Shown here: in pieces, positions 19,840-58,996 of the stretch
Layout of the letters: each line of letters begins with the position of its first letter
Numbering within the stretch: the stretch's first letter is position 1
DNA from: Piromyces finnis finn
Lineage: Eukaryota; Fungi; Neocallimastigomycota
DNA length: 64,000 bases
Direction of reading: 5' to 3'
NCBI GenBank assembly: GCA_002104945.1
Contig: MCFH01000082.1
Location: 62,001-126,000 of the forward strand
Notes under the pieces: model-generated
Told to the model about the DNA's origin: nothing
Databases searched by the model: none
What the model saw: the letters and a program-made list of their open reading frames with translations, nothing else
Program-made: the position numbers and the translations under genes

Positions 19840-19911
19840 TGGAGAGTGAGTGATTCGAACACCCAACCTTCCGCTCTGGAGGCGGACGCGCTACCGTTGC
19901 GCCAACCCTCC
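19840..19911 (-). tRNA. trnW: tRNA-Trp (CCA), intronless
   Basis: Cloverleaf: acceptor GGAGGGT/ACTCTCC, D stem GCGC/GCGC, anticodon arm TCCGC-CTCCAGA-GCGGA, T loop TTCGAAT. Confidence 0.95.
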
Positions 19912-19925
19912 TTTACTGATTAAAT

Positions 19926-20635
19926 TGTTAAGGAACCAACAAATAATGTTATTCTTGTCATAATTAATGATTATGACCTAATCCATTCATTATTGTTCCT
20001 AAATGTATGAAAACTTTACAATATTCTTATTTGTAAATTAATGTATACACTTAAATTATATTTAAAATTATTAATAATTATTTTTTATTGAACTTAAATT
20101 TTATTTTATTAAACTTAAAAATTAATTTAGTAATAATAATATATTGAAAATTATAGTTTATTGAACTTTTAGTTTAATTTATCAAGTTAATGAATTTTTA
20201 TTAATTAAAATTATGAATAATATTTCTGTAAAATAGTAAAATTTTTTAGTTAAATATATTTAAAGTAAACTTTTAATGTATGTTAATCAATTTAATAATA
20301 TGTATAAATATTTATTATAATAGTAATGTAATTTTATTATTCATTTAAAAGTAATTTAAATACTAAAATTATGTAAATAATTAAAGACTAATTCTTTTAA
20401 TTAACACTACTTAATTTTTTACAAAAAGTATAAAAAGGTGTATATTATAAGAATTAGAGAATATACAGATATTTTTATTTTTATTTTTATTTTATTTTAT
20501 AATTTTATATTAATATCTTAATAAAACAATTTTATTAATAAAACAATTTTTCTTATTTCATTTTAATATTATTTTTGAGTATTAATAAATTTATTAATAT
20601 TTTATAAATAAAAGTAAATTCCTCGAACCGTAACA
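19926..20635 (+). repeat. Element A 5' LTR
   Basis: TGTTAAGG...CCGTAACA; matches 27119-27828 with no differences seen by eye. Confidence 0.95.
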
Positions 20636-20642
20636 TAAAAAT

Positions 20643-20660
20643 TGGTGGAGATATCGGGGA
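20643..20660 (+). promoter_or_regulatory. Element A PBS, complementary to the tRNA-Ala 3' end
   Basis: TGGTGGAGATATCGGGGA; TGGTGGAGA is complementary to the ...UCUCCACCA end of Ala tRNAs. Confidence 0.8.
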
Positions 20661-20780
20661 ATAATATTAATAAAAATTATTAATACATAGGATAAAGTAA
20701 TATTAAAATATTACTAAAATATTATATAAATTTCTTAAAAATTTATTACCCTTCAAAGTTATAGGTAATATTTATATTAC

Positions 20781-21478
20781 TGTTGAAGCTTTAAGGTATA
20801 ATATTTTAGTAGAACTGAATTAGTACGCTTTAGAAGCAGTACTTATTTAGGAATTAGTGGTTAAGTTTTTAGGTCTAGTTTATCTTTCACAGTAGGATAC
20901 TGGAAAGCGCTGAACCTTTCTATTTTGCTAGAGAAATAGAAGTGCCTCGCATAATTGCTACATGACACTGGTAATACGGTAAGCTGGGCAATTGTGAACT
21001 ACTTAAGCACCCTAAATAAGTATTGGAAAATTGCTGTGAAATGCTGTTCTACTATACTTATTATTGTAATTCAAATTTTTAATAAATTAAATATTATTTT
21101 AGTATTTATAATTTTTTAAAAAAAAAAAAAAAATATTTTTTTTTTAATTGAACGATTTTTAAAAATTATTCTTTTTAAAATATAAATAAATAATTCGAAA
21201 GTGACCCTTAGCGTGGCAAGTTAAACTGCTGTACGTAATACTTTGGTGTTCAATTATATCTGATAATTGGGGAAGATAATCAATTATTTTCTTTCCGCTA
21301 ATTAAGTTAGTGATAATAAAGAAATTAATTACGTTACTTCCTTTTATTAAATTATATTTAATATTAACCATCGGGTATATTTGTGGCTTATCATCAAAGA
21401 GCTACGAGGGATTTTCACTTAGAATTACACAACCTATAATACTTGATGGTTTAACATTATATAGGTTGGCTTATATTT
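20781..21478 (+). ncRNA. Unidentified ~700-nt structured RNA module 1 in the element A leader
   Basis: Collinear conserved blocks and covarying stems relative to 43781-44479 (minus); see findings. Confidence 0.7.
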
Positions 21479-21630
21479 TTATAAAAAGAAATAAGTTTTT
21501 AAAAAATAATTAATTAAAAAAAAAAAAAAAAAAAAAATATAGATATATATATCTATTCTTTTTGTTGATTCTCTTCGAGTAATTTAATATTGCTAATTGA
21601 AATATTCTTTTCTTACTGTTTTAAGTTAAA

Positions 21631-21812
21631 CAAGTTATATCAGCATAGACAAGCATTATTAACTAATCAACAGAGGTATACTAGGGGTGGTAGAAAGATC
21701 CTGAAGCACGTGACGGAACTTAGATCGTGTGAATAAGGTGACGGCAACATTTACCATTGGACGAAAGACTCTTAGTTAATAGTCTATTATATATAATTTG
21801 GTCGGTAACTTG
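21631..21812 (+). ncRNA. Structured RNA module 2 in the element A leader
   Basis: Nested stems caagtta/taacttg, atagac/gtctat, attaactaa/ttagttaat; seven motifs collinear with 29739-29899. Confidence 0.5.
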
Positions 21813-22170
21813 AATCAGTAATAACAATATTAAATTAAAATTCTTGCTAGTAAATTGAAAACAAATAATAATTAACTATAAGAAAAACAGAAAACAAAAG
21901 TAATAATTTCATCTTTTCTGACTGAACTAAGATAGTAAGGAGTGATACTAAAAATTTAAATAAATAATTGGTAGTACGTGCTGTGCTAGATTATTTGTAT
22001 CTCATTCTGTCAAGTGGTCGATAAAGGAATTTCGAGCTTGGTTACAACTAATAAGTGGTCGATAAAGGAATTTCGAACTTATAATTTTTTTTAGACTATC
22101 AAAGGTATTTTTGAGTCTATACTGTGTCATCTTGTACTGCAATAAATTCGGTCAAGGAAAATACAAGAAA

Positions 22171-27095: not shown

Positions 27096-27118
27096 GCAAG
27101 AGTCTTCGTGGGGGCACT

Positions 27119-27828
27119 TGTTAAGGAACCAACAAATAATGTTATTCTTGTCATAATTAATGATTATGACCTAATCCATTCATTATTGTTCCTAAATGTA
27201 TGAAAACTTTACAATATTCTTATTTGTAAATTAATGTATACACTTAAATTATATTTAAAATTATTAATAATTATTTTTTATTGAACTTAAATTTTATTTT
27301 ATTAAACTTAAAAATTAATTTAGTAATAATAATATATTGAAAATTATAGTTTATTGAACTTTTAGTTTAATTTATCAAGTTAATGAATTTTTATTAATTA
27401 AAATTATGAATAATATTTCTGTAAAATAGTAAAATTTTTTAGTTAAATATATTTAAAGTAAACTTTTAATGTATGTTAATCAATTTAATAATATGTATAA
27501 ATATTTATTATAATAGTAATGTAATTTTATTATTCATTTAAAAGTAATTTAAATACTAAAATTATGTAAATAATTAAAGACTAATTCTTTTAATTAACAC
27601 TACTTAATTTTTTACAAAAAGTATAAAAAGGTGTATATTATAAGAATTAGAGAATATACAGATATTTTTATTTTTATTTTTATTTTATTTTATAATTTTA
27701 TATTAATATCTTAATAAAACAATTTTATTAATAAAACAATTTTTCTTATTTCATTTTAATATTATTTTTGAGTATTAATAAATTTATTAATATTTTATAA
27801 ATAAAAGTAAATTCCTCGAACCGTAACA
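27119..27828 (+). repeat. Element A 3' LTR
   Basis: Direct repeat of 19926-20635, preceded by the PPT. Confidence 0.95.
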
Positions 27829-27832
27829 AAAT

Positions 27833-28974
27833 TGATACGCTACTCACATAAAAACATGATAAAAACTAGCTGAATAAACACGACTTAACCCATAGTAACT
27901 TATAATAAAAATAAACAGTAATAACCCTTAAAGATGAATGAATAATAATTTTATGAAAATATAACCCTTTCTTTAAATAAATAATATTATCTTTATTATA
28001 TAATAAATTCTGAGTAAAAACGACCTAATAGTGATAATAATAAAATAAATTATTAAATAAAATAAATTATTAAATAAAATAAATTATTAAATAAAATAAA
28101 ACGACTTAATCCAATAATGTACTAAAATAATAAAATAATAATAAATAAATAAAAATGAATAAATAAACTAAAAATAAAATGATATACATCAAATTATTAA
28201 TTCTAGTGTTTATCCAAGTGTTCTTTAGAAATACTCTTAAACTTATAAATTAAAAAAATAACTAATTGAGTAATTATTACTAAAATGATAAACTTAAAAC
28301 CTGGAAATAGAACAATAATAACAATTCCAAAGATAAAATACAGAACTCTTTTATGTTTCTGTATAAAATGAGTGTTTATAATAATTGATACTTTTAATAT
28401 TTTAATTTTGTTAAATTTTTATTTTAATTTTATTTTAATTTTATTTTAATATTATTTTAATTTTAAATTTTAATTATTTTATTCGAGGTATTATACATTT
28501 AATGATAGTCAATGATAATTTATAATAATTTTTCTAAATTTAAACATTTTGAAGTAATAAGAAAATCAAATAAGTAATATTCTATAATATTTTATAATAC
28601 TAAGACATAATTTTAATTTATTCTTTTAATTTTAATAAATAATAACAATAGTAATAATAACATTTAATAGTTAAAAATAATAATACATGTAATAAATGAA
28701 AATGTATAAAAGGAAGATAAAATTCTTCTTTATAAAGGCGGACAATAAATAGAGAATAAAAAGACCATAAACAGATAATAAATAAATTATAAAATATAAT
28801 AAAGATTTAATTTAAAACATAATAAGAGTTTATTTTCGAGTTTTGAGTGATTTATTTGTTAATTATAAAACATATTTTATTTTATTTTAAATTTATTGTT
28901 TCATCATTATAATATAGAATTTATTATTTATTAAAAACATTATATTATTCACAAATATATCGGTCAACGCATCA
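27833..28974 (+). repeat. Element B 5' LTR (1142 bp)
   Basis: TGATACGC...CGCATCA; three copies of a 17-bp internal unit. Confidence 0.9.
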
Positions 28975-28982
28975 TAAAATTT

Positions 28983-28999
28983 TGGTGGAGAATCCGGGC
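28983..28999 (+). promoter_or_regulatory. Element B PBS (tRNA-Ala)
   Basis: TGGTGGAGAATCCGGGC. Confidence 0.8.
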
Positions 29000-29115
29000 G
29001 TGACCAAAGATATGAAAAAGAATAATATTAATAATAATACTAATAAATTCTAAAATATTAAGCGTTTATAAAAAAAACAGTTTACACTTAATTTAATTTT
29101 ATTATATATTCTTCT

Positions 29116-29148
<33 letters not shown>

Positions 29149-29670
29149 TTTAATTATATATATAAAAGGAAATATATATAATTTTAAAATTATAAAAATT
29201 TTAATATTTCTAAAAAGGGTATTTAAGAAATTAAAAACTAAGTGATTAATAATTAGTCATATACGTTACACAAGGAAGAAAATTTCTATAATTCCTATAA
29301 TCGTTTCCGTTCTTATTATTAATAAGGATAACTTAATCCATTCAGTTAGTTTGTTATATTTCTGATCTATCCAGGGGATCAGTGTGATAGTAAAAACTAG
29401 GAAAAAAAGTTAATCCTTCTCAGCAGTTAATAATAAGATCATAATTTGAATTAAATATACAATTTTTATTTCTTAATTAAGAGAATAAATTAATTCACCA
29501 GTGCTTATTTGTAGAGGCGGCTGTTGAATGAAAAACTTCTTAGCTTAAGGCTACCTACATATTAAGCGAATAATTTATTTCAATATTCTTAATTATTGAC
29601 TAAAAATTTTTTAATTTAAATTATAACAACAAAAAAAAAATAGTAAGTATATATTGGTTGTTGTTATATA

Positions 29671-29915
29671 ATAGACTGAGTTCGAAATATAGCAATAATT
29701 AAAGCAATTATTATTTAGAGAGTAAGGCGGGTACACACTCAGCAAGAGGGAGTAGGTATACTAGACAGCCTTTATTTGATTCTCAAGTAAGAGAGTAGCA
29801 AGTTCGGCTGAAAATCCTGAGTAAGGAGCAGAACTTTGGAAGTGAAAATTTATCATTTAAAGGTGGGGGTTTAGTAGGGATCCGAAAGTCTTTATAGTCA
29901 CTGTGCCTCGGGTGC
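29671..29915 (+). ncRNA. Structured RNA module 2 homolog in the element B leader
   Basis: GC-enriched island with motifs collinear to 21640-21784; stems actcag/ctgagt and cagcc/ggctg. Confidence 0.5.
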
Positions 29916-30008
29916 CTAAAAATAAATAAATAATTGTAACAATATATATAAACTATTATAATTAAATTAAATAAAAAAAAATATACATATTCTTATAAAT
30001 TCCTAATT

Positions 30009-30043
<35 letters not shown>

Positions 30044-30367
30044 ATTCTTTCATTCTTCCTTGATCATTTAAAATTGAGAGTTAATAAATTGCATTTAAAT
30101 TTATAATTAGATATTATTCCGTAAAGCTTCTATTATTCCTGACTAATAATAATAATATAATATACTTTCTATAAAATACTTCTCTGATCTGATCTCATTC
30201 AATATTAAATTTCATTTATTTATATAATTTTTATAATTTATATAATCCATATAATATATATAATTTATACAATATATATATAGATTTCTGTTGTATTACT
30301 TATTTTTTATTCTTTTATTTTTCTTTAATATACTTCTCAATTTCTAAATAATTTTCTTTAATTTTTT

Positions 30368-30404
<37 letters not shown>

Positions 30405-30636
30405 ATAAATTTTATATTATTTTATACTTTATCAATTTATCAATTATTTATATATTCAATTCTTTTCATTTTTAATTTTATAAATATTATTAATATTATT
30501 ATATTATTAAAGTTCAAAACACATATATATATATAATATATAAATTCCAATTATTTTCTTTATTATCATTTATTTCAAATTAAATTATTCTTTTATTTTA
30601 ATTATTTTACCTTATAAGAAATTTATATATACAAAA

Positions 30637-42200: not shown

Positions 42201-43673
42201 AGAAGTCAAAACAGAAGTTGGTTCTTGATTTGAGAGAGACGAAGTAGAAAAGTTAACAGAAGACTTCTTAGAAACAGAATTGTTAATATTTTTTGAAGAA
42301 CCCGAACAGAGAATAGTACAAGTACGATTAGTTTCGTTTTGAGATTGGATGTTTTGTTTATCGACAAATATAGGGTAAGTGAATGAATCATGCGGAGGTT
42401 CGTAGGAAGGATCTTCCATTGCAGGAAAAGCAGATCTTTCTTCAGGAAATTCAGGGACATTATTGGAGAGTGTTATACAACGATTATAACAGTAATCGGA
42501 TACAAATGAAATTTTGTTCTTTGTGAAATCGATAGAAGGATTGTGTTCTTTAAGCCAATCTATTCCAAGAATACAAGGATAATAAGGTAGATCAGTTACA
42601 TAGAATTGTGTTCGACAGAGATGATCTTTGTAGCGAAGATTCAAAGGAGATGTAATTCCAAAAAGAGATTGTCGACCACCGATACCAACGATATTTGGTA
42701 GGTTACCGTCATCATGATAAGGAATGTTATTATCGTTACAGTAATCTACATCAATTAAATTAAGTTTGGATCCTGAGTCAATAAGAATATCCGTATTTAG
42801 TTCATAAGAAAGTTTAAATTTAGTTGTCATTTTATTATGAGTTTTGTTTTCTTCTTTAGGAGCGGATATAAGTGTGGGAATAGATATTAGTGAAGGATTT
42901 TCACGATCTTTATTCTTTCTTTTTGGACAATTATTAAGCTTATGACTTGAAGCACCACAATACACACAAAGATTTTCTTTCTTTCTTCTTTCCTTTTCTT
43001 CGTTTGAGATAGGGCCATGGTTATTCCTGTTTGTAATGGACTTTGTTATTTTTGAAGAGTGATGAAAAGATCTTTTCTTTCGGTTTTGGTCATTGTTTGA
43101 ACCAGAAGGGAAAAAGGTATGATGTGTAGATAATCTTGAATCGATTCTTGAAGCAATAGTCTGTAATGAAAGAAGATCCCTAGGACCCGGAAACATTTCC
43201 AAAATACGAACGGCAACTTGTTGATTAAGGCCAGCTATAAATGCATCCATTTTGGCTTGTTCATTCCAGTTTGATTCATCAGCATAGCGGTTAAATTCCA
43301 AGATATAGCCTCTAATTCCTCCTAATCGGCGTTGTTTTAAGGTTCTAAGCATTTGATTTGCAACATAGGTAGCATCGTTATATCCATAAAAAGCCTTAAA
43401 TCTGTCAACAAAAGCTTGGTAGTTATTAAGACACGGATCATGGTTGTTTATAAGAGTAGCAGCCCAGTTCATAGCGTCTCCATAAAGTCTTGATATTATG
43501 TAGAGAATTTTGGTTGCGTCGTCTTGATACCGTTCAGGATATAGCATAAACACTAGCTCCACCTTAGCTAAGAAACCCTTCAGATACCTGCGATCCCCTG
43601 CAAAACCATCCTTAAGAGTTGCGTTTTCGAAAATATTATTATTATCCATGTGGTTGTTTTCGTTCTCTTCCAT
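39231..43673 (-). CDS. Element F Gag-Pol polyprotein with chromodomain, 1480 aa
   Basis: [28 protein letters not shown] integrase, EYEVEEIL...YLIKWKGY...SWEP chromodomain. Confidence 0.95.
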
Positions 43674-43780
43674 AGTACTTATGATGTTTTCTTTAATAAG
43701 CTTTAATAAATTTGTAAAAATAATAGAATAAAGTATTTAATTATATTTATTAATTGAGTAAATCTTTTTATTAAATAATA

Positions 43781-44479
43781 ATATAAACCAGATTATATAG
43801 TGTTAAACCATCAAATATATAACCTGTTTTATTCTTTATAATAAGTCCTTCGTAGCTCTTCACGATAACACGTATAAAGTCGATTGTTAATATTAATTAA
43901 ATTAATAAAAGAAAGGAACGGTGTAAAAATTTTTTTTAGTGTCTAACTTATTGTTAGCAATAAAAATTATTACAGGTTTTCTTTCCCTATATCAACCTTA
44001 TCCGAACGTAGAAGTATTATGTATAAGAGTTTAACATCTCACGCTAAAGGAGTTATAAAGAATATTATTTTATATTATTACAATTTTAATAAATTGTCTT
44101 AACAATTAATAATTATAATTAGAAATTGTTTTATTAGAAAACTTAATTTTAAAATGTATTAATTAAGAAATATTATTTTATTAAAGTAAGGCATTTCCGG
44201 CTATTTTCCGGTCTATAATCAAACAGCAAAAGATAGTATACAACTATAAATCTCACGCCAGCTTGCTTATTACAGCGTCTTGTACGTGGTGTACCTCGGA
44301 TTCTCCTACTTCCTTATTCAAAGTAGAATAGCTCAGAGCCTGCCAACCCAATTATTGTACAGGTTAAACTCGATCCCGTTAATCTTTTACTTTTTATAGT
44401 TTGAATTATATACCGCTTCTAAAGCGTACTAATTCTACTACTTTAAGTAAAAATATTTCTTTAAAGAAAAGCTTCAACA
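43781..44479 (-). ncRNA. Structured RNA module 1 homolog in the element F leader
   Basis: Homologous to 20781-21478, including a 21-nt identity and covarying stems. Confidence 0.7.
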
Positions 44480-44547
44480 ATAAAACTTAAAAGTTTTATC
44501 TATAACAATTTCTTAAACACTAAGGTATTAAGCTTTTATATTATAAG

Positions 44548-44557
44548 GAGATTTTAT
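44548..44557 (-). promoter_or_regulatory. Element F self-priming PBS
   Basis: ATAAAATCTC (minus) complements the LTR segment at 44727-44736; TATAAATA begins at 44776 on the minus strand. Confidence 0.75.
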
Positions 44558-44924
44558 TGTAAAGAAATGTGTCTTTAACAATAAAACAAATTATAATATT
44601 TACTAAATAACTTAGTAATATTAACACTTTAAAATATTCTGTAAATTATTAATTTATAAAAATATCATTAAAAACACATAGAATTTAACTTAATAAGTTA
44701 GTGTTTAATAATATAATTATTTATTAATAAAATCTCGATTCTTTAAAATATTTGGGAAAATTCACTCGTATTTATACTAAAAATTTTTTAAATTAATTTA
44801 TAAAATTTTTTCAACTTAAAATTCTTAACCAATCAATAATCTTCATATAAAATAAAATTTAAAAATAAAATAAAATAAAATAAAATTATAATTTTTTTTT
44901 AAAATAGTATCTATGAGGTCTCGA

Positions 44925-54760: not shown

Positions 54761-57700
54761 ATGGATGAAGAATTGATGAATAATGCTACGTTGAAGGATG
54801 GTTTCTCTGGAAATCGTCGTTTCTTTAAGGGTTTTCTTGCCAAAATAGAATTAATCTTTATGGTCTACCCAGAGCGTTACGCGGATGACGAAACAAAAAT
54901 CGTTTATATCATTTCGAGACTATATGGTGAAGCTTTGAATTGGGCTGCATCATTAATTCACAATCATGATGAATGCCTATTAAATTATGACTCATTTGTT
55001 GCCAAGCTTAAATCTGTGTTTGGTGACAACGACTCAACGTTTGTGGCTAATCAAAAACTTCGAACTATAAAGCAAAGAAAAATCGGTGAGATTCAAAAAT
55101 ATATTCTTGAATTTAACCGATACTCCGATGACTCCTCTTGGAACGAAAGTGCAAAAATGGACGCCTTCTTAGCTGGACTACAAGATCAAGTCGCCAATAG
55201 GATTTTAGAAATGTTTCCCGGTCCACAAACGCTATTAAATTTACAAGTTATTGCATCAAGAATCGATTCTAGAATCGATACCAACAGAAGATTCTTCAAC
55301 AACAATCATTCTAATAACACTACTCAAAACCGAAGAACTGAAGTAAATAGAAAACCTTTCACTTCAAGAAATAAGAAAACTTATGGACCGCTTTCCTCAG
55401 AAGAAAAAGCTAGAAGAATTAAGGAAAATCTCTGCCTGTATTGTGGTTCTCCAGATCATAAGTTAAGTAACTGCCCAAAAAGAAGTAAAAATGAAAAATC
55501 AGCTGGGACTCATATTTCTAACACTACGCCTGAAAAGAAGCCTAGAATAAGATTCTCCGATAATCCCAATCTGAAACAACCAGTCTTTGAGTTCCAACTC
55601 AATACTTCCGACGTCTCCGTGAATACTAAACTACTAATTGATTCAGGATCTCAACTTAACCTACTAGATGTGGTCTTTGCCGAAGAAAATAATATTCCTT
55701 TTGATAAATCCGTCTCTTTCAACAAAATCTCTGGCATTGGTGGGGAACAACAAATCTTAGGTAAATCTATCCCAATTTCGATCAAATACAAAAACCACCA
55801 ATGTAAAACTATATTCTATATTGTAGACCTTCCGGGATATTGTGGCATCTTAGGTGCTGAATGGTTACATCAGCACAACCCTAATATTAACTTCGTTGAA
55901 AAAGAATTATCTTTTAATTCAAATTTCTGTCTGTCACATTGCTCTGTTATTCCTAACGTTGCCCCTACTTATGCTATTTCTTCTATTTCTAATGATTTCA
56001 AATCTTCTTGTAGCACTTCAACAAATTCTTATATCCATGATTCAACAAAAAATCTTCCTAAAAATAATGATTCCACTATCAACCCTCCAAGCAATAAAGA
56101 AGTTTTTCTTCCTGCTGAACTCCAAGCCTTTGAAGACGTATTTAATGAAAAAGCCGCTGAACAATTGCCGCCTCACAGGCAATACGACTGTGAAATCCGT
56201 CTTAAACCGGACTCTAAACTTTTTTATGGACCGATTTATCCTTTAACGGATAAAGAATCAATGGCATTGAAGGAATACATTGATGAAAACTTGCGAAAAG
56301 GTTTCATCAGACCTTCAAAATCACCGGCAGGTGCCCCAGTACTTTTTGTTCCGAAAAAAAATGGTGAGCTACGTCTATGTCAAAATTATAGGAAATTAAA
56401 TGAAATCACAGTCCGTGATTCCTACCCTTTACCATTAATTAACGACATGTTGGAGCACTTAGGTAAAAGCAACATCTTCTCCAAACTTGATTTAAGATCA
56501 GCTTATAATCTTGTGAGGATAAAAGAAGGTGATGAATTCAAAACTGCTTTTACTTGCAAATATGGACACTTTGAATATACTGTAATGCCGTTTGGTTTGA
56601 AGAACGCGCCTGCAGTATTCCAACATTTCATTAATGATGTGCTTGATGGAATCTTGGGAGTATTTGTCTTCAGTTATATTGATGACTTAATTATATTTTC
56701 GGAAAATTTTAAAACTCATGTTATACAAGTCAAAGAAGTACTTAAAAGACTTAGAAAAGCCGGACTTTATGCAAAACTTGAAAAATGTGAGTTCTTTGTC
56801 CCATTTATCGATTTTTTAGGTCATCGTATATCGTCTGATGGAATATTAATGGATCCAAAGAAAATTTCATCTATCCTGGAATGGCCAACTCCTAGAAATG
56901 TTAAAGAGGTTCAAGCGTTTCTTGGGTTAGCTAATTATTATAGAAGATTCATTGCCGGTTTTGCTGATCTCGCACAACCACTTAATGCATTACTTAAAAA
57001 GGATGTTAAATTCTGCTTCTCTCATCAGTGTGTGAATTCTTTTAATTTAATCAAGACCAAATTTGCTTCTTCTCCTGTTCTTGCATACCCGAATCGTGAT
57101 ATACCTTTCATGGTTGAAACGGATGCAAGTAATTTTGCTATAGGAGCCATTCTTTCCCAAACGAATCCGAAAGACAATACGGTTCACCCTGTAGCATTCT
57201 TCTCCAGATCGCTTAGTTCTTCTGAAAGGAACTATCCGATCTACGATAAAGAACTTTTAGCAATTGTAGCTGCTTTAGAAAATTGGCGTCATTTACTTAA
57301 GGGGACTGCTCAGCCTTTCAAAATTTTCTCGGATCACAGAAATTTGCTTTACCAGAAGAAACCCGAAAAAATGACACAAAGATTAGTTCGTTGGTCTTTG
57401 TTTCTTGCCGAGTTTAATTTTATTATTGTTTATCGGTCGGGTTCTGCTAATGGTAAACCTGACGCTTTATCCAGAAGACCAGATTACTTAGAAAATTTTA
57501 AGGATTCCAATGATACTCCAAATTCCGTTCTTAGACCCGAAAACTTTTGTGCCCTGGTTCTGGATAACAACCCCCTTATGGATAAAATCATTTCAAATAG
57601 CAAAGATGATAAATTCTACTTTGAAGTATGCAAATACTTAGAAACTCAAATTCCACCTGTCCCTCATTCGCAAATCGAAAACTTTAAAATTCAAGATGGT

Positions 57701-58996
57701 GTATTATTATTCAATGATAGGATCTATGTTCCCCAAGATTGTCGTTTGGAAGTTCTTAAAATTTGTCACGACTCACCCTCAGCTGGACACTTCGGACTAA
57801 AGAAAACTACTTCCCTTATTGTTCGTGATTTTTGGTGGCCTTTTCTCTCTGTTGATGTAAAAGAATATGTAAAGTCTTGTGAAATATGCTGCCGTTCGAA
57901 GGACTCTCGACACAAACCTTATGGATTTCTTTCTCCTTTGGAAATTGCTGAACGTCCTTGGTCTTCCGTATCTATGGACTTTATTACGGATCTTCCACCT
58001 TCTCAAAAGTATACTTGCATTCTTGTAGTCACCGATAGATTAACTAAATTATGCCACTTTATTCCTTTTGAAAACATCCCTTCTGCCTCCGCTACTGCTG
58101 ATGCTTTCATGATCAACGTTTTTCGTCTCCATGGATTACCTAATGAAATTCTTTCGGATAGAGGTACTCAATTTACCTCTAAATTCTGGAATTCTATTTG
58201 TAAATCTTTCGATATAAACCTAAAATTTTCTTCATCCTACCATCACCAAACTAACGGACTGACGGAGAGGGTAAACTCCGTTGTAGAACAATACTTAAGG
58301 TGTTACTCAAATTATAAAGGTTCCAATTGGTACAAATTCTTACATCTTGCCGAATTCAGTTACAACAATGCTGTTCAAGAATCTACTAAAACTTCACCAT
58401 TTTTTGCTAACTACGGCTATAATCCGAAATATTCTCCAATTTTACCAAGTCGTACCGATGTACCAATTGTGGATGAATTTACAAGAAATTTCAAAGAAAT
58501 AATTAAAACTCTTAAAGATAACTTAAAGAAATCTATTGATCAACAAGAAAAATTTGCAAACAAACACAGAAGTAAAGCTCCTGAACTCAAGGTAAATGAT
58601 AAGGTCTGGATTAACAGTTCTCTAATAATGCGGAACGGTAATAAGAAGCTAAAACCTAGAAAACTTGGTCCGTACAAAATAATTGAAAAAATATCACCAG
58701 TTTCTTTCAAATTGGAGTTACCAAAAGAAATTCGTATTCATCCAGTTATCCACGTTTCAGAATTGGAACCCTACCATGAAGATAAGTTCAAAAGAAAGCA
58801 ACCGCCACCTCCACCAGTTATTGTAGATAATAATGAAGAATTTGAAGTTGAGGAGATATTGGACAAAAGAAGATATTATGGTAAAGTTCAATACCTAATT
58901 AAATGGAAAGGATATCCGATATCTGAAGCATCTTGGGAGCCAGAAAATAATTTGAATTGTCCAGAGCTACTTAAGGAATTCAACGAAAAGAAATGA
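54761..58996 (+). CDS. Element D Gag-Pol polyprotein with chromodomain, 1411 aa
   Basis: [25 protein letters not shown], integrase, chromodomain; clearly similar to the F polyprotein. RT has CQNYR in place of the usual CVDYR. Confidence 0.95.

Follow-up and report, generated by a model that had tools for sequence, protein, structure and literature searches.

The leaders of elements A and F, two Ty3/gypsy retrotransposons of the anaerobic gut fungus Piromyces finnis, share a module composed of two autonomous structured RNA domains, D1 and D2, of ~270 nt each. This division is well supported, as are a repertoire of at least four leader domains (D1-D4) in Ty3/gypsy elements of anaerobic gut fungi and the exchange of domains between A-like two-ORF and F-like chromovirus lineages. 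It is firmly established that the domains are new to Rfam. With regard to function, our analysis leans towards portable cis-acting domains of genomic RNA that may serve dimerisation or selective packaging, a reading which we consider plausible rather than probable.

Retroviral replication depends centrally on structured leader RNAs, which have hardly been explored in Ty3/gypsy elements. In Ty1 and retroviruses, the 5' regions of the RNA form compact folds that contain signals for dimerisation, packaging and priming, palindromes and kissing loops among them; the structure of Ty3 RNA was described as uncharacterised in a 2016 review (PMC4974528). The leaders presented here combine a covarying loop-loop contact, tertiary or intermolecular, with a leader intron that is spliced and yet kept in all genomic copies. 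Together with natural domain swaps between lineages with unrelated Gag, and with AUG-purged leaders of 0.5-1.5 kb, they make testable how LTR retrotransposons choose, pair and translate their genomic RNA, and how portable such signals are.

The shared leader module of elements A and F

Both elements lie in the window, the stretch of 64,000 nucleotides of P. finnis DNA that was analysed. Element A has LTRs, a tRNA-type primer binding site (PBS) and gag as a separate ORF; its pol lacks a chromodomain. Element F is a single-ORF chromovirus, and its polyprotein carries Ty3 capsid, RT, RNase H, integrase and chromodomain. This agrees with the earlier note, which had described A as tRNA-primed, two-ORF and lacking a chromodomain and F as a chromovirus. 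The gag ORF of A has homologues among the A-like Gag proteins of Piromyces, Neocallimastix and Orpinomyces, the same genera that, together with rumen metagenomes, were the sources of Gag homologues in general. The PBS type of A is also present in the A-like elements L091 and L103. The leaders and their parts are as follows.

20641-22170 (+): leader of A, from the end of the 5' LTR to the gag ATG (22171); 1530 nt, AUG-poor; LTR repeat pair 19925/27118
20643-20659 (+): tRNA-type PBS of A, starting with TGG immediately 3' of the LTR; read from sequence
20781-21046 (+): domain D1 of A; homologues in F, L086, L091/L100/L101 and L103
20817-20837 (+): 21-nt block of A identical in F (F copy at 44415-44435); hairpin with a UAG loop
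21066-21201 (+): spliceosomal intron of A between D1 and D2; 136 nt, GT..AG, 7% G+C
21202-21477 (+): domain D2 of A; closing helix, H2, long arm H3-H4, inner arm junction H5-H8, 3' hairpin H9
21220-21226 (+): loop 1 of D2 in A, the loop of H2; GUUAAAC, pairing in fixed register with 21449-21455
21449-21455 (+): loop 2 of D2 in A, within the 16-nt loop of H9; GUUUAAC
~21590-21800 (+): domain D3 of A, outside 20781-21478; homologues in L030, L061, L085 and L103
43674-44557 (-): leader of F, from the 5' LTR to the gag-pol ATG (43673); 884 nt; LTR pair 38480/44558
44191-44479 (-): domain D1 of F, from alignment and helix comparison
44058-44190 (-): AT-rich spacer of F between D1 and D2, from alignment
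43780-44057 (-): domain D2 of F; loop 1 at 44029-44035, loop 2 at 43802-43808

Alignment by MAFFT of A 20700-21560 (+) with F 43700-44560 (-), combined with sensitive blastn, shows that A 20781-21478 and F 44479-43780 are collinear, with 63.6% identity over 739 columns (E 2e-50). The collinear blocks listed in the earlier note are intact in this alignment, and its coordinates for the 21-nt identity and for the motifs GTTAAAC and GTTTAAC are exact. Its separation of the blocks by AT-rich spacers holds in part, because the central spacer of A turned out to be a spliceosomal intron. Exact blocks of 14-21 nt are common to the two non-coding stretches, while the Pol proteins of A and F are only 31% identical; such similarity is well above what chance or co-inheritance with the coding regions would produce, and ordinary co-descent cannot account for it. 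Both stretches out-fold their dinucleotide shuffles (z -6.6 and -4.9).

Beyond the A/F match, blastn detected no further copy of the module in the 64-kb window. The relative of F at 54761-58996, with a 62% identical polyprotein, had been noted as lacking the module, and indeed neither blastn nor the D2 core model found anything in it. In the P. finnis genome (56 Mb in 232 contigs), A and F are young high-copy families, represented by at least 26 (A) and at least 35 (F) near-identical full modules. The D1 21-mer hairpin motif has 67 matches in the genome, all of A-type or F-type (0 for the reversed control), and the D2 motif has 65.

A search of the whole window against Rfam 15 at gathering score gave only a tRNA at 19840-19911. 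When the threshold was relaxed to E<=10 for segments 20600-21700, 43600-44700 and 21450-22150, the only matches were two spurious ones to bacterial sRNAs (11-15 bits). No Rfam 15 model fits, including those of group I/II introns, RNase P/MRP, hammerhead, HDV-like and twister ribozymes, IRES, CTE, snRNAs and SRP; the failure to match group I/II introns or RNase P/MRP by eye is thereby extended to E<=10. A literature search returned nothing on these leader domains, nor on retrotransposon leaders of anaerobic gut fungi. The domains amount to three or four large RNA families not described before, in which covariation is unusually clear; they would enter Rfam as new families and would aid annotation of the repeat-rich genomes of these fungi.

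Two other identities were considered for the module and rejected. Exons of a protein gene are incompatible with the alignment, in which no period-3 pattern can be seen by eye, with the spliced sequence, which is full of stops, and with the changes, which are pair-compensating. The module begins with TGTTG and has AACA near its end, as in a solo LTR or a nested mobile element; conservation and pairing cross this supposed end, no target-site duplication is present, and in neither A nor F do the 5-mers on the two sides agree.

Compensatory changes and the loop-loop contact

The D2 alignment comprises eight lineages and was folded into a consensus with RNAalifold. Standard pairs occupy 90.2% of its cells, compared with 40-48% when the 3' partners are slid. 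Changes on both sides of the pair were found in 35 of the 62 pairs, against 8-13 in slid controls and 18 +/- 2.6 in shuffled ones (0/500), and the covariation score is 0.442 against ~0.1 after sliding. Helices H3, H4 and H6 differ in sequence in nearly all lineages and keep their pairing. A CM of the D2 core (R1) scores 101-152 bits across all eight lineages. Stems proposed earlier for this part of the module, namely the closing helix ccct-tagc/gcta-aggg, the gca/tgc hairpin and the 3' hairpin, were recovered with six further lineages, and pairing preserved by compensatory change beyond controls is seen in D2, in helices of D1 and in D3.

Covariation also bears on the possibility that the module acts at the level of DNA, through transcription-factor, enhancer or insulator sites comparable to those of Drosophila gypsy. 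Conserved blocks with variable spacers between them would suit such sites, and enhancers or insulators are present in the leaders of several retrotransposons. We nevertheless give this reading hardly any weight, since the 35 D2 pairs that change on both sides stay Watson-Crick or wobble, which the controls do not reproduce, and since only one of the strands tolerates G-U pairs, as expected of RNA and not of protein-binding DNA.

The two loops that had been suggested to kiss on the grounds of their exact complementarity retain it by covariation. The contact comprises seven pairs in a fixed register, of which five change on both sides. Loop-loop cells are paired in 82%, including the two lineages whose D2 is without the 3' hairpin (L061 and L072), while slid controls reach 27-41%. 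The loop pair is GUUAAAC:GUUUAAC in A, F and L085, GUUGAAC:GUUCAAC in L092, GUUGAGC:GCUCAAU in L087, and GCCAGGC:GGCUGGC, with one G.G mismatch, in L071, and the covariation originates from three independent lineages. Kissing between loop 1 of the L061 D2 and a presumed loop of D3 was also considered and dismissed, because the segment of D3 in question forms one side of a helix of that domain that itself covaries.

In A, D1 consists, from 5' to 3', of an AAGCUU palindrome block, the 21-mer hairpin, the long-range helix S1, hairpin S4, the GUAAUA hairpin, and GGAAAAUUGC..GAAAUGC. Because the five lineages with this domain differ too much in length for counting by column, cognate strand pairs were compared with non-cognate ones. 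Helix S1 is formed between the segment after the 21-mer hairpin and the segment before GGAAAAUUGC; the mean energy of its duplex is -13.0 kcal/mol for cognate and -4.5 kcal/mol for non-cognate pairs, and the true assignment is the best of 120 permutations. The true assignment is likewise the best of 120 for the second helix, S5 (-7.7 against -3.5 kcal/mol). Local hairpins of D1 named in the earlier note, including ttctattt/aaatagaa and the GUAAUA hairpin, were recovered with compensatory changes, the covariation of the GUAAUA stem being weak when taken alone (14 of 120 permutations). A palindrome of the AAGCUU type is conserved at the edge of D1, in the form of GAAGCUUC in L103.

D3 shows compensatory changes in 15 of 49 predicted pairs, at identities of 76-92% among lineages. 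A hammerhead-like CUGA..GAA motif in this domain was rejected, as the core position A9 is unmet and there is no Rfam match. Among the leader domains as a whole, several invariant unpaired motifs are located at junctions, namely UAAUAC, AAGAGCUA and GGAAAAUUGC.GGAAAUGC.

Domain combinations and exchange between lineages

Related leaders were reached through contigs of Gag and Gag-Pol homologues and by one pattern scan of metagenomes, in which 2 of 14 matches were real (L072 and L085). In total, about 12 element lineages with leader domains were found in the P. finnis genome, the Neocallimastix lanati assembly and rumen metagenomes. In A, F and ten further leaders the domains are placed between PBS and gag on the sense strand, and the distance from the last domain to the gag AUG ranges from 86 to ~630 nt. 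Combinations D1, D2, D1+D2, D2+D3, D1+D3 and D1+D4 were observed, and they occur in both Gag lineages. Those other than A and F are listed below.

L086: F-like; D1 only
L071, L087: F-like; D2 only
L092-L099: A-like; D2 only
L061: F-like chromovirus; D2+D3
L085: A-like, Gag 57% identical to that of A; D2+D3
L103: A-like; D1+D3
L091, L100, L101 (Neocallimastix lanati type): A-like; D1+D4
L104-L106: A-like; D4-like domain only

A subfamily of A itself (L030 and two more copies) has D1 and D3 without D2. It keeps the LTR and lacks 21133-21495, after which the sequence resumes in a further conserved block. Because D1 stands alone in L086, D2 stands alone in L071, L087 and L092, and this subfamily combines D1 with D3, the two domains are separable, and the single ~700-nt RNA envisaged in the earlier note is replaced by two units.

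Whole-genome search with the D2 core CM revealed at least 123 cores in at least eight score classes, indicating that several families besides A and F bear D2 in the P. finnis genome. The same model found nothing beyond the known copies in the window and nothing in L086, L088-L091, L103 and L104. Neither blastn nor the D2 core model detected a domain in loci L089 and L090, of Piromyces sp. E2 and Neocallimastix 'constans', and the 21-mer and the D2 3' motif each had 0 matches in a viral contig collection.

D2 is present in A-like two-ORF elements (A, L085, L092) as well as in F-like chromoviruses (F, L061, L071, L087). The nearest relatives of the F copy are those of A-like L085, A and L092 (67-70% identity), while F-like L061, L071 and L087 reach 58-63%. 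Similarly, D3 shows 84-85% identity between the chromovirus L061 and A, which equals the value for A-like L085 and exceeds that for A-like L103. Identities of D2 and D3 therefore do not track Gag type, in agreement with the earlier proposal that the module is distributed independently of coding regions. Patchy presence, incongruence, and near-identity despite saturated coding divergence together speak for repeated transfers of leader domains, with recombination among leader RNAs or DNAs as the presumed route.

Such a combinatorial distribution might also be left by captured or parasitic RNA, that is, a cellular ncRNA, a SINE-like retroposon or an intron-derived sequence that was template-switched into leaders and does no service to the element. 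In accord with this, A-runs follow D2 in A (21516-21538) and both D2 and D3 in L061, and an A16 stretch is found in the intron after D1. A-runs are, however, ordinary in an AT-rich genome, and neither target-site duplications nor terminal repeats flank the module. All 67 genomic matches of the D1 21-mer are copies of A- or F-type leaders, all eight sequenced D2 domains are in sense orientation upstream of gag, and compensatory change across diverged lineages implies selection within the elements. We therefore regard capture without function as quite improbable.

The leader intron, AUG depletion and possible functions

Four public contig sets of P. finnis (X1-X4), presumed to be derived from RNA and available as contigs, not reads, hold the leader on the sense strand of the element. 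A contig of 584 nt in X1 joins 21065 of A to 21202, with at least 255 nt on the shorter side. The spliced-junction 33-mer has 0 matches with up to 2 mismatches in the 56-Mb genome, while the unspliced boundary has 28, so that the intron is kept in 28/28 genomic copies. Segment 21066-21201 of A is a spliceosomal intron, as follows from its GT..AG ends, its 7% G+C, and a junction present in a contig (one contig, of a run presumed to be RNA) and absent from genomic DNA. With 28 unspliced and 0 spliced copies, it follows that new insertions are copied from unspliced RNA alone. Depth over the intron is absent in three of the four runs, and in X4 a single low-depth contig extends into its 3' part. 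In all four runs most of U3 is without depth, which is what RNA would give. Another apparent joint, from 20841 to 21439 in X2, was rejected as a splice because it belongs to an F-leader contig that touches two blocks identical in A and F.

In two runs, contigs of D1-D2 are ~7-fold shallower than the contig of D3-gag-pol, and D1-D2 may therefore be missing from most transcripts. This depth step between D2 and D3, together with the complex fold and invariant junction nucleotides, would suit a ribozyme that cleaves or splices itself within the leader. The step does not appear in X3, however, and it coincides with an A-run, where assemblies break; furthermore, the sole removed segment has the ends and composition of a spliceosomal intron, and ribozyme and intron models of Rfam give no match at E<=10. 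The ribozyme and intron-derived parasite ideas of the earlier note find no positive evidence, and self-cleavage or self-splicing is in our estimate very improbable.

Ten leaders of 0.5-1.5 kb contain 37 ATG triplets, compared with 123 +/- 9 in dinucleotide shuffles, i.e. 3.3-fold fewer. The leader of A has three, all within conserved motifs of D1 or D2 (23.3 +/- 3.5 when shuffled), compared with 18-31 occurrences for each remaining permutation of these three letters. In the leader of F there are three as well, where 9.7 +/- 2.4 are expected. Depletion spans the whole leader length, including the parts upstream of the domains, and it indicates that the leaders are kept open for scanning, as is typical of retroviral leaders.

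AUG depletion counts against an IRES, one of the functions listed in the earlier note, by which the domains would recruit ribosomes internally for gag translation and move in the manner of viral IRES modules. The leaders are long (0.5-1.5 kb), and the domains resemble the HCV-like (type IV) IRES of Flaviviridae and Picornaviridae: these are 5'-UTR domains of ~300 nt, with multi-helix junctions and a tertiary contact, that recombine between unrelated replicators. Leaders with an IRES typically carry several upstream AUGs, though, and a 3.3-fold deficit throughout the fungal leaders is a signature of scanning from the 5' end. The variable spacing between the last domain and the gag AUG, and the lack of a match to any Rfam IRES model, are also unfavourable. 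Internal initiation by these domains is accordingly judged highly unlikely.

Among the functions proposed in the earlier note, dimerisation or packaging fares best, and it stands as an interpretation of the following features: the covarying loops of D2, the palindrome of D1, the position between PBS and gag, a leader kept free of AUGs, and spliced RNA that is not propagated. The domains would supply RNA-RNA contacts of full-length genomic RNA, leading to genome dimerisation and selective packaging, with the D2 contact made by its two mutually complementary hairpin loops and the D1 contact by the conserved AAGCUU-type palindrome. As such contacts would be intrinsic to RNA, a domain that has moved could still function beside a different Gag. 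Several observations weigh against this reading. The two loops may equally form a tertiary contact inside a single molecule, and the kiss is not universal, given that D2 of L061 and L072 is without the 3' hairpin. Packaging signals normally match the Gag of their own element, and these domains stand beside two unrelated types of Gag. The spacing to gag is widely variable, and most transcripts may be devoid of D1-D2.

The main rival is an element for a host factor. Here D1 and D2 (and D3 and D4) would be recognised by the ribosome or by a conserved protein of the fungus; they would help intron-containing RNA to leave the nucleus, stabilise RNA, or aid scanning and translation across a leader of 0.9-1.5 kb, much like CTE/RTE/MTE or 5' post-transcriptional control elements of other retroelements. 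This reading accounts for the indifference to Gag type no less well than packaging does, because shared domains freely exchanged between elements with two unrelated Gag types fit a host partner better. The several invariant unpaired motifs at junctions are in keeping with it; unspliced RNA of a leader whose intron is spliced efficiently needs a nuclear exit route, and AUG depletion shows that scanning ribosomes read the leader. On the other hand, no export or translation element of Rfam matches, protein binding alone does not account for the covarying loop-loop contact, and known export elements of retroelements are usually found 3' of the coding region. We therefore see a host-factor element as possible and somewhat doubtful. 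It is also conceivable that D1, D2 and D3 are new classes of catalytic or host-factor-binding RNA.

Export elements such as MPMV CTE, IAP RTE and MusD MTE are comparable in being structured, portable cis-acting RNAs that are acquired by different elements and allow intron-containing retroelement RNA to be expressed. They differ in lying near the 3' end and binding known export factors, whereas the fungal domains are located 5' and have no similarity to them.

For dimerisation or packaging, the closest parallels are Psi, the DIS kissing loop, PAL and the Ty1 5' pseudoknot of retroviral and Ty1 leaders, which have in common with the fungal domains the position between PBS and gag, a compact fold, and contacts through loops or palindromes (PMC4974528). 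Further shared features are upstream AUGs, absent there and depleted here, a splice donor in the leader, and the copying of unspliced RNA alone. Unlike those leaders, the fungal ones have no sequence or Rfam similarity to them and employ two different complementary loops instead of one self-complementary loop. Their ~270-nt domains can stand alone and are swapped between lineages with unrelated Gag, and the splice in A removes only the AT-rich spacer, leaving both domains in spliced RNA.

If the D2 loops do pair genomic RNAs, the identical loops of A and F could lead to co-packaging, which would favour swapping of leader modules by template switching. An extension of this, which we rate as unlikely, is that loop sequences act as address codes, a shared 'RNA currency', by which families with the same code, such as A and F, package together and thereby shuffle their modules. 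Two loops that are complementary to each other and not to themselves, within one domain and capable of intra- or intermolecular pairing, are also a feature of the bicoid mRNA 3'-UTR, a localisation element of a cellular mRNA that is unrelated in sequence, fold and context.

Structured domains of the leader beyond D1 and D2

In addition to the structured RNA domains D1 (20781-21046) and D2 (21202-21477), the leader of element A, a two-ORF Ty3/gypsy element without chromodomain, carries a third conserved structured domain, D3, with invariant motifs including GAUCCUGAAGC and GUGACGGAAC. Compensatory changes were observed in 15 of its 49 pairs, and its copies in a chromovirus and in an A-like element are 84-85% identical. 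A fourth leader domain, D4, is carried by A-like elements from a Neocallimastix lanati-type genome and from rumen metagenomes, and is possibly a distant form of D3.

Locations of D3 and D4 (L-numbers, elements beyond the window)
window 21590-21800: D3, element A
L061:985-1190: D3, chromovirus
L085:5525-5735, minus strand: D3, A-like element
L103:1885-2090: D3, A-like element
L091:2210-2480: D4
L100:1821-2120: D4
L104:344-663: D4

A short hairpin-like unit is tandemly repeated between the structured domain and gag in L091:2600-2810 and L092:1110-1290. In the F-like element L088:1590-1800 (GCA_016295205.1), a partial D1-like core precedes a distinct domain that is richer in GC and in which a putative tRNA-like GGTTCGAACC T-arm motif was noticed.

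Presence and absence of D2

Search of the whole genome with a covariance model of the D2 core disclosed more D2-bearing families, in score classes of 116.2 bits (18 copies), 114.2 bits (10 copies) and several smaller ones. D2 is absent from a subfamily of A with LTRs 92% identical, which lacks the counterpart of window 21133-21495.

D2 in further families (examples) and the A subfamily without it (C-numbers, contigs of the same genome)
C1:449011: D2
C6:31154: D2
C214:22134-22301: D2, 40 kb before the window
C191:190272-193624: subfamily without D2 (L030)
C53, C89: same subfamily

Because this subfamily shares its D1+D3 layout with L103, D2 may have been inserted into A rather than lost from the subfamily.

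Contig depth and AUG content of leaders

In public contig sets of this organism, presumably RNA-derived, zero depth was found in all runs across 20134-20484 of the A LTR (19925-20640; 27118-27833). Contigs extending from pol into the 3' LTR end 63-147 nt inside it, and leader contigs start by 20514, downstream of a TATA-like box near 20430. At 21471-21563, a stretch that includes a run of 23 A residues as well as a TATA-like tract, depth rises from ~16 (D1-D2) to ~117 (D3-gag-pol) in sets X1 and X2; this step is absent in X3. Transcription may start internally, the RNA may be cleaved, coverage may be biased towards 3' ends, or a variant leader may be involved.

The leader of another element, at window 28900-30600, contains 2 ATG in 1701 nt, compared with 14-25 for other A/T/G permutations. 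Since this leader is also almost ATG-free, long AUG-purged leaders seem to be general among these retrotransposons.

Insertion sites of family A

At 10 of the 25 loci examined, a family A copy lies upstream of a tRNA gene, ~14 bp from its 5' end, a placement resembling Ty3-like targeting of Pol III genes. The adjoining genes are those for tRNA-Trp, Cys, Gly, Arg, Thr, Ala, Ser and Leu.

Family A beside a tRNA gene
window 19840-19925
L004, L006, L007, L009, L011, L013, L014, L017: loci beyond the window
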